A stretch of DNA of 62,939 nucleotides, the filler included, from Reticulomyxa filosa (Eukaryota > Protista > Foraminifera), in NCBI GenBank assembly GCA_000512085.1. It is 16 parts of 16 records of this genome, joined end to end, with 100 filler letters (N's around TTAATTAATTAA, not from the genome) between each part and the next. Parts side by side here need not be neighbours in the genome. Positions count along the whole stretch, not along the records: positions 41,240 to 47,690 come from ASPP01022436.1; 15 more parts are not named here. The stretch is one strand, 5' to 3'. Positions 41,240 through 47,790 of the stretch are shown piece by piece. The notes under the pieces were generated by a model, which ran no database searches, was not told where the DNA came from, and worked only from the letters and a program-made list of their open reading frames with translations. Position 1 is the first letter of the stretch. Each line of letters starts with the position of its first letter. A program made the translations under genes and the position numbers.

Positions 41240-43040
41240 TCCTTTTCCTTTTTCTTTTTCGTTCAATCCTTTATTTTCGCTCTCAGTCTTTGATTTCTCT
41301 TGTCCAACTTGTTTTCCACCTTTTTGACTTTCCAGACCACTGCTGCCGCTTTCGCTCTTCAGCTGCTGCTGTTGATGTTGCTGTTGTTGTTGTTGTTGAT
41401 GTTCACATCCTTTACCTTCTTTCTCTTTGTGCTTACTCGTGATATCTTCACTTCTACTTTCATGCTTTTCTTTCAACTTTCCTTTGTTCTCGCTTTCTTC
41501 CTCTTTGCGACTGCTGCTGGTCTTCTCTTTTTGCTGCTGCTCTTCTTTCAGGCAGGTCGTCTCCTTGCCCTCTTCCTTGCGGCTGCTTTTTTCGTCGTCT
41601 TTCTTGCCTCCAATCGCCTCCGATTTTGCCACGCTCTCTTGCTTCGAGTCGTAGCTGCCCGACACGTACGAATTCAACAATGTTTTAATTGCAAGCCAGT
41701 CCTCGTTTTCTGGCATCTTTACCTTGTCTTTTTTAAATCCCAAAAAAAAAAAAAAAACAAAAAACAAAATCAAACCAATTGATGAATGGTGATGTTTTTG
41801 AGAAAGAGAAGAGAAAAAGGGGGGGGAGGAGGAAGAGGAAAAAAAAGCAACGACAAAAAAATCGAAAACACCCCTCCCTTCGTTTCAACCCCCCTGTTGC
41901 TACCCTCCCTTTTTTTTTTTTCTCTTGCAAAAATGCACCCCCACATTAATTAACAAAAAAAAAAAAAAAAAACGTAAAAAACGCACTTTCTAGAATTTCT
42001 TTTGCAGACACTTTTTGTCCATAAAAGGCACTGTTGCACTCTTCTCTGACCACCAGAAGATCTCCTTTAACGGAAACGCCAATGAACGCGCCTTTGGCTA
42101 CAGCATAAGATAAGATAGGCGCCATTTTAGCCTGAGCGTTGGCGGCAATGGAAGCATGAGCGTTTCTGCCAAAAGGACCTGCGGATACATTGACGTCACC
42201 TCCCAGTTTCAGCTGTCCACGGCTCATAAATGTTTCGACCGACTCATGGTCAAACAATACCATCAAGTAGTCCACTTTGGATACACCAATCTTTTTTTTT
42301 TAAGTGATTTATTTTCAAAAAATAAAAAAAACAAATTGTATTCCAACAAAACCAAAAACAAAAAAATTCGTTCACACTCAACTTCGAGACCCCAACTGAC
42401 ACCAGCAGCTCCTATTTTGTTGATTGACACAAACACGTCACGTTGTTGTCCATTTCATTAATGTAACAGAAAAGAAAGAACCCCCCTGTTTCACAAAAGA
42501 AAGTTCTGTACATGCGTTCTTCATTACAAACTCCTTTCTCTCTTCCCCCCCCCTCTTTTCTTGTTATACGTGTTTTTTAATGAGGCTCAAAAAAAAAAAA
42601 GATTGAGAAACAGTTGTCCATTTTTTTCGTTGTTGGACATTAGAAAACGAAAAAACAAAAGACAGCTTTTTTTTCATACCTATTGCCAACGGTGGAGACC
42701 AACTGCCATCCGATACTCGGGACAGCACTACGCCGGAGCCCATCTCTCCTCCTACTCCTAAACCAGCCTTAAAAATAGTCATAAACACAATGCCTTTCGC
42801 TTTTTCCAATACCGTAATTGGAATCTGCTTCTCTATTCCCACGTCGGGGCCCATGAACGCCTCCAAACTCTCACGAGCTTGCTTTAGTAATTTCTCCATT
42901 TGTAAGCGATCATTTGATTTGTCTTCAAGCTCGTTGTACTGCTTGCTAGCTTTGCTTTCAACGCCCTCATACTGCTCTTTCATTTTTTTTTCGTACTCTT
43001 TGCCACGGTCACCCGAGCTTGTAGTTTCGGTTTGAGACAT
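41240..43040 (-). CDS. SYLF (Ysc84/SH3YL1) domain protein with a charged tail, 3' partial
   Basis: QIPITVLEKAKGIVF...KAGLGVGGEMGSGVVLSR...WSPPLAI; GGDVNVSAGPFGR; SYAVAKGAFIGVSVKG...NSAFYG. Confidence 0.92.
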
Positions 43041-43385
43041 GATAAACGATAATTAAATTAACAACAGTATTAACTTAAGTGACTTTAAATTTTGTTTCAA
43101 CAAAGCACAACAAAACGCAACGATAACAAGTTTTTTTTGTTAACCCCCGTTCAGAGCAGGGGAGGATGAGCACACTTTTTGCATCATGTCATCAATTTTC
43201 TTTTTCTTTATAAAGGCACTGAGAAAAATAGTTTTATTTATAGTGTTTTGGCAATTAAGTGCAATAGAATAAAAAAATTGCAATGTAGTGCTTTTGAACG
43301 CGCCTTGAATCTTTGAAAAAACTCAAAAGGTGGTATATCAGTTATAGTCCATAAACTTTCTATTTTCGTGTAAAAGAACTGTAAA

Positions 43386-44235
43386 ATGTCTGATATTACT
43401 TGGAAGCCTTCGTCATTTGACACGTTTCGCCTACGTATGCAGGCTTTTTTGTTCCGCTTTGGACTGTGTACAAAGACAAAAGACAGTATAAGAGGGGCCC
43501 ACGAAGCAGATATTCTTCGAGTTCTCAGAAATTGGATGAAATACAAACAATACCATATGTCTGAGCCCGAGCATGCAGTGTATAAAAAAGCACTTTATTA
43601 CAAAACAGGAGGAACAATAGCTGGGGCATTAGTTCCGTGGGCTCTCGCCGCGACTTGTTAAGTTTTTTTCTTTCTTGAAACCAAGAGTCTTTTTTTCGAT
43701 GAAGAAAGAGAAACCGAAATTTCTTACTTTTCTTGTCCCAAAAGAGCTTTTTTTGTTACTCTTCTGAATAAAAACACTCCATTTTGCCACGGTTTCAATT
43801 TGAGCAGCTGTTTTTCGTGTATCTTTGACAAGTACCCCGACAAGAAGAGTATTAACCGGGCTTTTGAGTGGAGTACTCGGTTGGACATCCTATTGGGCCT
43901 TGTGTTCAATCCATTTGAAACAATTGCTTGGTTTAAACGACTCGCCATTGGCGTACGTGGCTTTTCATGTGTTGAGTCTTGATATGATTCATTATGTTTA
44001 TTTATTTTCTTGTGAAAATGAAATACAAACAATAAATTGAAAATAAAGAATGTGCCATCCAGAGTACACTCGATTGCGAGGATCATGGCAGACTCGATAC
44101 AATTTAAGTGGAATTGCATATAGATATTCTGATTTTAATTTGGACACCGTCATTCGCGAGAGAATCACACATGTCAATACAACTCCCAATCTATATATCG
44201 CTCAAAGTAATATCCACACATCGGCACCACAGTGA
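43386..44235 (+). CDS. Small two-TM membrane protein of unknown function, 3 exons
   Basis: Exons ~43386-43656, ~43808-43970 and ~44049-44235 appear to join, with two short hydrophobic Gly-rich helices. Confidence 0.6.
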
Positions 44236-44792
44236 ATTATATAACAAAATGATTAGTTTAAAAATAAAAATGTTGCAATAAATGATGATAATAATAACAA
44301 TTTTTAATATGCATTTGCTATCTTCAGATCTCATAGAAGCGAAGAAGAAAATTAACCAAAACTAACCATGCTTTTCCTTTAACCACGTCAAAAAAAATAA
44401 AAAGTCAAAAGTTAAACATTTTAATATAACTCTTTGCTCTGCAATGCTTGAAAGAGTATTTTCAAATCCGTTTATATTTATATGCTCGTTCCATTAACAT
44501 TTTTTCTTTTTTTGCATTGCAAACATTCGCTGGTCAGTTCATCTCTTGGTCCCCGTTTTTGGTGAAATAACAAAGTTTTGCTATCTTTGTTAAGCGAGCT
44601 GAAAAACAGATAAAACTGAACCAATATCTTTTGGAAACACTTAACTTCAATATGAATTTTACCTAATCCATAATGGTGATTAGACCAAAATTATAAATGA
44701 AGAAAAAGATTATTTTAACATAAAAAAATGATTGATAAAGAAATTTGATATAGTCCCATAGTTTGATATATATTAAATAATAAAAATAACTC

Positions 44793-44957
44793 GGTCTAGC
44801 TTGAGGAAGCTAAGAGAAACTAATGGAAAGATCAATAGATTAATACTGATGTGTGTGTGATCCGGAGCACATGTGCAACAATGTTAATTTAAGTGATCTT
44901 AGTTATTATGTGACCTTAGTAGCGATTTAGTAGTAGGTTCGACTCCTACCTGGACCA
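44793..44957 (+). ncRNA. tRNA-like RNA: acceptor stem and T-arm with a long hairpin in place of the D and anticodon arms
   Basis: GGTCTAG (44793-99) pairs with CTGGACC (44950-56) followed by discriminator A; T-arm GTAGG-TTCGACT-CCTAC (44933-49); T-run from 44963. Confidence 0.7.
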
Positions 44958-44962
44958 TTATA

Positions 44963-44972
44963 TTTTTTTTTT
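44963..44972 (+). terminator. Putative Pol III oligo-dT terminator
   Basis: T10 run 5 nt after the discriminator base. T-runs are common in this genome, so it is weak evidence alone. Confidence 0.45.
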
Positions 44973-46523
44973 ATATATGAAATTTACATTTTATAAATAA
45001 TAATAATAACATGTTATATAAATACATAAATCTATTGAACAATTACATTTACATATAATATACAAATTAAATTGAATAAATCGAAATGACAACAATATTA
45101 AGTTAATATAACTTTGTCATTGTAAATTTAATTCAAGATTTTACTATGAAGAGTAATATACTGAAACATTGTAAGTCCAAAAAGTTAAACAAACGTTATC
45201 AATATTAGTCAGTATATTAATACAATAAAAAACTATATAATATGACTTATTCTTGACTACGCTGATTTATTACTTTAAGATAACTAACAACACATTGATG
45301 ACCATTTCGCGATTGCGAATGAATTATGTAATGAATATAATGTAACTGTAAGGATATGTCCAAAACATCATTTTGAAAAGTTTAAAGATAACTCGATGTT
45401 TATTTATTATTTGAGTAAGCTAGAATCAAGTCAAATTAACAATAATAACAACTTTGATTATTGAAAAAATCTTATTAATACTTGTCCAGACATAATTATC
45501 AAGTTTTTATTCATCTATCTTTGTATAATCTATTAAGACTATGTTTGATATGAAGCTATGTCTATCAATGATGATAATGTTTGCAAAAAGATACAATTCT
45601 GACTTTATAAAGCTATAGTCATAGAATGTATTGTACTATATATCAAAGATGATCAATTATACTCATTGCGATCACATAAAAGTTATTGAACGTAATCTTT
45701 AAAGCTTTGCAATGCATACATAATCTAACGTTTTATACGCGATATTCGTTAATTTTGCTGATGAAAACAAAAAAAAACATTGGATTCTTCTTTGCTAAAA
45801 ATGCCACCATTATTTTGTGTTCAATATAGCAAGTCGTACCAATCATGCTGGAGAAGAAATAATACAAGTTCACAATTAATTTAAAAACAAAACTGTACGT
45901 ATTAACAAATAAAAAAAAAATTTGAGTTATTTTTTAATGGTATATTATCCATATATGTGGATAAAAACAAAGAATAAGTCTGTGATGATGTACACTTGGT
46001 GTTAGTAGCATATTCGTAGAACAAGATACCACACAAACATATTTTTCACACAAAGATCTATTTTATTTAATCAGCACTTCGATTTTCGAGTTCCGCAGCC
46101 TCTGTATGCTATGTTTTTTATTTTTAAAAAGATAGTCACGACTACAATTTGCTTATTAGATATTGTGCTGAACAGTTTATTGAAGAAACAATCGACCGTT
46201 GCGGAAGCTTTGATTGTTGTGAAAAGGTTTGAACTACAAATAATAATGTCCTTTTGCGAATGATTACTTTTAAGTAATTTATTACTGTATTAAACAAAAT
46301 GTTAAGCACATGCTAAGCAATGTCAACATAAACAATGTATTTTGTTCTTTGATGAATACTGTTTTTCAGATTTGTAGACATTAAAAAAATAAAATTAACA
46401 TTTAAAAATTAATTTTTTCTATAGTATTGTAATATATAATGGATAAAATTCTGTCAAAAAGTTAGCAATGCTCATCATCCCATTCCCTAGCAAGTAAATG
46501 AAAAACATAGATAAGCTGAAGTA

Positions 46524-47640
46524 TCAATTATCACTGACTGCGATACTATTTCTAAAAAATTTAATAACAGGTGTATTTGCACTCTTGCAAATTTTTGTCT
46601 CTTGACTCCTTTTGGCCGACGATAATCTGTTTTGAAAGTCTTTATCCTTGACTTGTGTGAATGTAATAAAATATTCTCCTGATTGTTCATGAAATCCAAA
46701 TTTGATTGCAGGTATCCCTGTTCTTTTGTACCAGCATCTGGGTACTCTTCTTTCAATGAGAAGTACAGTCGAAGCCCATTGCATCAGCCATTGCTCAGTT
46801 GCTTTTTCGCGAATTGATTCAGTTGTTTCAGTCTAAGAGTGAATTTCATCAAGCAAACAAAGTGCACTCGTTTTCCGCTTTCCGTTGTACAAAGAACAGG
46901 GTCATCTTCTTTAAAAAAAAAAACTACATACCATCACTGCAATCAGTAAATTCCATAACATGACCACTGACAGCAATGAAAAGGTAATGTAAATGCACTG
47001 AACAAAAGTTCTATCAAAAGTGGATTCGCCAAATTCGCTGAATCCTTGCAGCCCTAAACTGACTTGATAAAGGTTAAACATTTGTGCTATCCACTGTGAC
47101 AATACACTTTGTTTCGAAGAAGCAGCGTGTTGATTTAAATCGTTGCTCCTAATTAATAAAGCGGCACTGAAAGCCATCAATAGCATGATAAAAATGAAAG
47201 TGAATCTACTTACATCGCGCACCAATATTCTGGAAATAGCCAATACTAATCGACCAGTGGATTTTAAAGCTTGTGCAAACATTAAAGTATGTAGCCACTC
47301 CATAATCAACACCAGCACAAACAAAGCTTTTACGGTGTTGACCATACGTACTTTTTCATTCATTTCCTGCACAGCAATGTTTTTTCGTTGCGACAATATG
47401 AGAAAGGCAACGAAGCTGCAAATGTTGCTACTCCAAGAAGCTAACTTAAACAGACCTGTTACGGACAATGTAATTTTTTCATGACCGCGTTCAAAGTAAA
47501 TGTGCCAACCCCGCAAAAATCCGTGTTCGTCATATAGCAAATAAAACTCCCACAACTCAATAAATGTTACGAGTACAACTTTGCACGACATTGCCAACAG
47601 AGGCAATATTATCCAAAATGGGAAGTCATTATTGCTATTT
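46524..47640 (-). CDS. TRP cation channel, TRPV-like (TM region and TRP domain), 5' partial
   Basis: TGRLVLAISRILVRDVSRF...LWNLLIAVM / TETTESIREKATEQWLMQWASTVLLIERR. Confidence 0.85.
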
Positions 47641-47790
47641 TTTTTTATTTTTTTTTTTGGTTTGTTGACTCCAAACTTAATAAAAACAGANNNNNNNNNN
47701 NNNNNNNNNNNNNNNNNNNNNNNNNNNNNNNNNNTTAATTAATTAANNNNNNNNNNNNNNNNNNNNNNNNNNNNNNNNNNNNNNNNNNNN

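Follow-up and report, generated by a model that had tools for sequence, protein, structure and literature searches.

The closest known architecture to the element described here is the tRNA-like domain of tmRNA, including that of the reduced mitochondrial tmRNAs of jakobids. In both, a 7-bp acceptor stem stands on a canonical T arm, an unpaired analogue of the D loop carries GG about 6 nt past the acceptor, and a long helix occupies the site of the anticodon arm. Intron-containing pre-tRNAs share with the element an internal B box, an oligo-T terminator and a helix extending from the position of the anticodon stem, and the likeness to tRNA pseudogenes and tRNA-derived SINEs lies in an origin from a tRNA gene, an internal polymerase III promoter and possible flanking direct repeats. 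Functional analogies are offered by vault RNA, a type-2 polymerase III small RNA with a terminal stem and a variable core, and by bacterial YrlA, a tRNA-mimic Y RNA: in these non-decoding RNAs a long helix is joined to A and B boxes or to a tRNA-like module. The topology of the element is the reverse of that of YrlA, whose acceptor-like stem is closed and whose two termini are located at the foot of its long helix.

The element lies at positions 44793-44957 (+), in intergenic DNA of the foraminiferan Reticulomyxa filosa, within a window (the whole stretch of DNA that was analysed) of 62,939 nucleotides. Judging from its sequence, we tentatively propose that it is a tRNA-derived polymerase III transcription unit, the product of which would be a non-decoding tRNA-like hairpin RNA.

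Genomic setting and predicted architecture

Positions 41240-47690 of the window constitute a complete 6451-bp R. filosa contig, ASPP01022436.1 (assembly GCA_000512085.1), on which an ORF at 46911-47606 (-) has 99% identity to 'hypothetical protein RFI_25906, partial [Reticulomyxa filosa]'. Called genes on this contig, all on the minus strand, comprise a YVC1_C channel-like gene (46524-47675), a gene for a 158-aa protein (42564-43040) and a low-complexity gene (41309-41716), and an uncalled exon at 41949-42275 (-) encodes a Ysc84 (Las17-binding) domain (domain E 1.7e-28). From the positions of the called genes and this exon, the element is surrounded by a gene-free spacer of ~3.5 kb. No ORF of at least 50 aa lies over it, the longest ORFs that touch it being 20-25 aa and the longest inside it on the plus strand 25 aa. 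Its G+C content is 36-39% versus 14-19% in both flanks, making it a local G+C island.

Other features of the same contig were recorded. At the Ysc84-like gene the assembly calls only the upstream 158-aa ORF (42564-43040, -), and because the Ysc84 exon (41949-42275, -) falls outside this call, the gene model seems to be truncated or split. Between the exons of this gene lies a stretch rich in purines and containing runs of G8 and C9 (41792-41934), which gave several weak matches to miRNA families (best MIR8643, 27.8 bits versus 135) and is probably low-complexity sequence; it takes part in a long imperfect inverted repeat of 31 nt (41809-41839 and 42532-42562, 692 nt apart) with 77% complementarity. 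In the spacer that holds the element, positions 44014-44137 (+) match the C/D-box snoRNA snoR120 below threshold (29.4 bits versus a cut-off of 55, E 0.41). The match is good at both ends, including the terminal ...UUCUGAUU, with a 51-nt insertion between them, and this sequence may represent a C/D snoRNA ~650 nt upstream of the element.

The ends of the element form the top half of a tRNA. The 5' acceptor strand GGTCTAG (44793-44799, +) pairs with CTGGACC at 44950-44956 to give seven base pairs, six Watson-Crick and one U-G, with predicted pair probabilities of 0.9-1.0; the 3' strand together with the discriminator A at 44957 spans 44950-44957 (+). The T arm (44933-44949, +) has a perfect 5-bp stem, GTAGG/CCTAC (44933-37/44945-49), and the loop TTCGACT, its predicted ensemble probability being only ~0.5. 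The 3' acceptor strand abuts CCTAC with no gap, and the T stem is stacked directly on the acceptor. In this the element agrees with tRNAs, which combine a 7-bp acceptor and a discriminator with a stacked T stem of 5 bp and a TTCRANY loop. CCA is not encoded after the discriminator, where TTA comes next.

Between these ends the minimum-energy fold replaces the lower half of the cloverleaf by an imperfect hairpin, hereafter the rod (44809-44920, +), held between two linkers. A 9-nt unpaired linker, CTTGAGGAA (44800-44808, +), stands in the place of the D arm, with GG as the 13th and 14th nucleotides of the element. The other linker, AGCGATTTAGTA (44921-44932, +), is 12 nt long and takes the position of the variable region in the fold. 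The rod, in the place of the anticodon arm, contains 43 pairs, 35 Watson-Crick and eight G-U, and closes on an 8-nt apical loop, GATCCGGA (44859-66); it is interrupted by 1-nt bulges, by 1x1, 1x2 and 2x2 internal loops and, close to the apex, by a single bulge of 2 nt. A D-like hairpin of 4 bp can be drawn (CUUG/UAAG, 44800-03/44811-14, with AGGAAGC as its 7-nt loop). It starts at position 8, not 10, and is incompatible with the base of the rod; its formation costs +2.9 kcal/mol, and its pair probability is at most 0.01.

The signals of a type-2 polymerase III gene are also present, namely a B box, an oligo-T terminator and a body free of internal T4. The exact B box, GGTTCGACTCC (44936-46, +), is the sole exact match in the window, and a T10 run that would serve as polymerase III terminator (44963-44972, +) follows 5 nt past the discriminator; a second short run, TTTT at 44989-92, precedes the downstream copy of a flanking repeat discussed below. 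TTTT does not occur inside the element, as is the case for just 39 of 592 nearby intergenic 165-nt segments (6.6%). The A box has the consensus TRGCNNAGTGG and usually lies at +8 to +19. Read from the sequence, a degenerate A-box-like motif, TAGCTTGAGG (44797-44806, +), matches this consensus only partially and is placed at +5 to +14, where its first bases coincide with the last of the 5' acceptor strand. The leader upstream of the element is AT-rich and TATA-like.

An initial annotation of this DNA had described an acceptor and T-arm minihelix joined by a stemless linker to a long helix, and this architecture stands. The acceptor, discriminator A, T stem, T loop with B box, and T10 run were all found where that annotation placed them, as were the helices it named in the rod; its statement that a D stem is absent holds as well, with the qualification that the improbable D-like hairpin above can be drawn.

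Comparison with tRNA and tmRNA

Searches with tRNA models gave no match to the element. ARAGORN made no call there in default, intron, relaxed-score, mitochondrial or tmRNA mode; two calls in mitochondrial mode fell elsewhere and look spurious. Rfam, searched at E values up to 10 on the contig and on a 216-nt segment, listed no match to tRNA, tRNA-Sec, tmRNA, Vault, Y RNA or SRP. Within the tRNA clan the top-scoring model was cyano_tmRNA, at 11.8 bits versus a cut-off of 70, and its match covered the T arm and 3' acceptor strand only. Relative to the tRNA family (RF00005), the D arm at positions 10-25 is absent, with the 9-nt linker instead, and the 5-bp anticodon stem with its 7-nt loop (U33, purine at 37) is absent, with the rod and its 8-nt loop instead. 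The checks with ARAGORN and covariance models that the initial annotation had proposed therefore identified neither a tRNA nor a tmRNA.

That annotation had also offered a tRNA with a very unusual intron as an alternative, and had named a canonical cloverleaf after intron removal as the result that would speak against a tRNA mimic. Every single segment whose removal leaves 68-95 nt was deleted in turn, and each of the 1890 resulting variants was run through ARAGORN. No canonical cloverleaf emerged; 19 variants were called, all weakly and all as tRNA-Leu(UAG). The Leu model needs the removal of ~44805-44880. Its D stem is a wobble stem of 3 bp, its anticodon stem combines three A-U with two G-U pairs, position 37 is U, and the variable region, 23 nt long, is unstructured. 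As a control, the acceptor and T arm were kept and the interior shuffled with dinucleotides preserved, giving 60 sequences, and the deletion scan was repeated with 1414 variants. At least one tRNA call was obtained from 34 of the 60, and at least 19 calls from 11 of the 60, so that the Leu(UAG) model is at chance level. Moreover, the end points of the Leu deletions, which run from the linker to near the apex of the rod, are not paired positions of the rod, and the model consequently leaves the rod unexplained.

Introns at defined sites were considered in the same way. A hand search found neither a D arm nor an anticodon arm, and no canonical 37/38 intron that would give a U33/R37 loop, and the rod fold contains no bulge-helix-bulge, that is, no two 3-nt bulges 4 bp apart. 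Were the rod itself the intron, nothing of it but its base could remain: removal of 44815-44907 (93 nt) leaves 72 nt with the stem-loop CUAAG-AUGUGAC-CUUAG, a His-like remainder with the anticodon GUG and A73, in which U33 and A37 are present and the D arm is absent. This reading was rejected as not significant, one stem plus U33 and A37 being too little without a D arm. An intact tRNA gene that simply acquired a hairpin by insertion is likewise excluded, because removal of the rod leaves 53 nt and because no deletion beats chance in restoring a cloverleaf.

A genuine tRNA gene carrying a long, structured, ectopic intron is accordingly very unlikely. The His-like remainder and the 19 Leu(UAG) calls would be its traces, foraminiferan tRNA genes are undescribed, and a report on Cyanidioschyzon merolae that describes ectopic tRNA introns (PMC3728597) provides a precedent. 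Canonical 37/38 introns and the ectopic introns of C. merolae and of nucleomorphs occur in pre-tRNAs from which the element differs in having neither a D arm nor a bulge-helix-bulge, nor a U33/R37 anticodon loop after removal of a canonical intron. Against an ectopic intron also stand the chance level of the Leu calls, with their 3-bp wobble D stem and U37, the lack of a bulge-helix-bulge at either set of junctions, and Rfam tRNA scores below 11.8 bits. The His-like model has no D arm, and we know of no nuclear tRNA of this kind. The intron alternative of the initial annotation is thus not borne out, the ARAGORN intron mode giving no call and the deletion calls arising at the rate of the shuffled controls, and the element is not a decoding tRNA.

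The resemblance to the tRNA-like domain of tmRNA, in which a stemless D loop is followed by a long helix, had been pointed out in the initial annotation and is matched by the predicted fold. The same annotation had reported that the G3-U70 alanine determinant is missing, and the 3-70 pair is indeed U-A. The element further differs from tmRNA in lacking a message-like domain, a tag frame and pseudoknots, and in its setting, a spacer in the nuclear DNA of a eukaryote, where a polymerase III terminator follows it. ARAGORN in tmRNA mode detected no message-like domain, and the interior is almost wholly paired with plus-strand ORFs of at most 25 aa; the element fails every defining test of a tmRNA that was made.

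It is therefore highly improbable that the locus encodes a tmRNA-like RNA reduced to its tRNA-like domain and relocated to the nucleus to act in the mitochondrion. This explanation draws on the common topology (acceptor, GG linker, long helix and T arm), on the tmRNA model being the best Rfam match within the clan, and on the mitochondrial genomes of retarians, which encode no tRNAs (PMC10127745), so that these mitochondria need RNA import, a circumstance with no direct bearing on the element. It is opposed by the U-A pair at 3-70, by the lack of a single-stranded message-like region or tag reading frame, by the negative ARAGORN result and an Rfam score of 11.8 bits versus 70 confined to the T arm and acceptor, and by the nuclear, polymerase III-type context.

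Fold strength and possible decay or duplication

The predicted structure is a property of the plus strand. On this strand the folding energy is -47.2 kcal/mol for the element as a whole (z -3.4), a value equalled by 0 of 200 shuffles, and -31.0 kcal/mol for the rod alone (z -4.2), equalled by 0 of 500. The minus strand of the whole element gives -29.9 kcal/mol (z -1.2), and that of the rod -19.7 kcal/mol, the same as the shuffle mean. The weak minus-strand fold therefore confines the structure to the plus strand, and the T loop and T run define the same strand independently.

A scan for the top half alone, defined as a T loop on a 5-bp stem with a 7-bp acceptor next to it and T5 no more than 20 nt away, found one site in the contig, and such a site was seen in 3 of 2000 contig shuffles. 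By a rough calculation, chance could produce the top half alone about once in a genome as large as this one, or a few times in a large genome. A chance origin of the top half and the rod together is not realistic.

The composition of the rod bears on whether it has been maintained or has decayed. Roughly one fifth of rod positions are non-Watson-Crick, whereas the acceptor and T arm retain all 12 of their 12 stem pairs without mismatch. Neutral decay of a DNA palindrome, taken as the null, would yield equal numbers of G-U and C-A mismatches; the transition-type mismatches observed in the rod are eight G-U and one C-A (one-sided p ~0.02), or five and one when the (TG)n part is left aside. The initial annotation had argued from G-U pairs that work only on the plus strand to selection at the RNA level, and the direction of this argument is upheld, with a statistical effect that is modest. 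This part consists of (TG)5 (44850-59). In addition, the 3' arm of the rod contains a 15-nt direct repeat, 44889-903 TTAAGTGATCTTAGT and 44906-920 TTATGTGACCTTAGT, with 87% identity, and the motif TTAGTAG occurs a third time at 44927-33, beyond the rod. Given this repeat and the third motif, pairing at the rod base could shift into other registers, and local duplication may have given rise to part of the rod.

The (TG)5 run and the 15-nt internal repeat are typical products of slippage. They would be expected if the element were a dead tRNA gene, its D and anticodon region destroyed by rearrangement and repeat slippage and its hairpin incidental, with nothing selected save perhaps residual TFIIIC binding. 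We regard this as a possible but somewhat doubtful account. Functional tRNA mimics are far outnumbered by tRNA pseudogenes, the element has a degenerate A box, and it is single in its contig and has no homologue in the metagenome, prokaryote and viral collections searched. A dead tRNA gene is harder to reconcile with the deletion test, in which no single deletion restored a cloverleaf above chance, with acceptor and T-arm pairs that are intact in 12 of 12 cases when ~20% of the rod is non-Watson-Crick, and with a rod that is stable on just one strand, the one that the T loop and T10 run specify without reference to the rod. Perfect acceptor pairing and a retained T arm also distinguish the element from known tRNA pseudogenes and tRNA-derived SINEs, as do the absence of a tail and the position of the B box at the 3' end beside the terminator.

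Searches for related sequences were negative, both for a further copy within the 6.4-kb contig and for a homologue in the metagenome, prokaryote and viral collections. The channel-like and Ysc84-like neighbour proteins have no R. filosa paralogues that would point to a duplicated contig. A metagenome scan with the 3' 21-mer of the element retrieved nothing but a phage-like tRNA array of 7-9 tRNA genes, present on two metagenome contigs. This array includes a degenerate tRNA-like gene of ~83 nt (L001 878-959, L002 336-417), which default ARAGORN missed and which was called as Leu(CAG) at a relaxed threshold only; its 21-nt T arm and 3' acceptor strand are identical to those of the element, and the alignment shows nothing further shared.

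The unit is bracketed by a 17-nt direct repeat, which could be a target-site duplication. The upstream copy, TAAATAATAAAAATAAC (44774-44790, +), ends 2 nt before the element, the downstream copy, TAAATAATAATAATAAC (44994-45010, +), begins just past the second T4, and the two are identical at 16 of 17 nt. Their score was reached by 0 of 140 natural, equally spaced flank pairs and by 11 of 1000 shuffles (p ~0.01). Such a repeat would be left by insertion of a dispersed tRNA-derived repeat copy, SINE-like or from another mobile unit, and the genome of R. filosa is highly repetitive. We nevertheless consider this origin unlikely, as the low-complexity AT flanks mean that the repeat may be due to chance, an A-rich tail is absent, a B box placed at the very 3' end and the preserved acceptor pairing are unlike the heads of SINEs, and the downstream copy is reached only if the transcript reads through T10. 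The dead tRNA gene and the dispersed repeat are nonetheless serious rivals.

Implications of a proposed non-decoding tRNA-like RNA

An undescribed polymerase III tRNA-mimic RNA, as suggested by the initial annotation, plausibly fits the sequence. For the transcription unit that we prefer, TFIIIC would bind the B box and the weak A-box-like motif, and polymerase III would make a primary transcript of ~175 nt ending in T10. The minihelix of acceptor and T arm is the main feature by which RNase P, RNase Z and the CCA-adding enzyme recognise their substrates. The two nucleases would trim the transcript to ~165 nt and the CCA-adding enzyme would append CCA, the product being a stable tRNA-like hairpin RNA unable to read a codon. 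This unit is favoured by the plus-strand fold, the sole exact B box, the rarity of the top-half motif in contig shuffles, the local G+C island and the gene-free spacer, and the predicted T-arm probability of only ~0.5 speaks against it. Because these end-processing enzymes act on acceptor/T-arm minihelices, a tRNA-like RNA of ~165 nt, possibly CCA-tailed, is to be expected.

The intact ends, the excess of G-U pairs and the absence of internal T4 lead us to lean weakly towards a fold that has been maintained at the RNA level. As to the intact ends, a uniformly decaying relic should show damage in the rod and in the 12 stem pairs alike. Counting against a selected RNA are the (TG)5 run and internal repeats of the rod and an A box that is both degenerate and misplaced. 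Maintenance at the RNA level could indicate either that the small RNA has a function or that this gene is the source from which a small family derives. The fuller proposition, of a functional nuclear non-decoding tRNA-like RNA that is made by polymerase III, matured by tRNA enzymes and possibly CCA-tailed or aminoacylated, with the rod as a protein-binding or small-RNA-generating module, is rather improbable on present indications.

A literature search on tRNA genes, tRNA introns, vault RNA and small polymerase III RNAs of foraminifera or R. filosa found nothing, and a 2025 study states that tRNA abundance data are missing for any foraminifer (PMC11980380). Should the element be a relic or a repeat, it would be nothing more unusual than what decaying tRNA genes leave behind in a genome rich in repeats. 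If it is functional, it would belong to a class that has not been described in foraminifera or, in such a form, in any eukaryote. If it is expressed and conserved, it would constitute a new eukaryotic tRNA mimic, in which the tRNA maturation machinery is used for a non-decoding RNA, and would mean that such genes are missed by tRNA finders.
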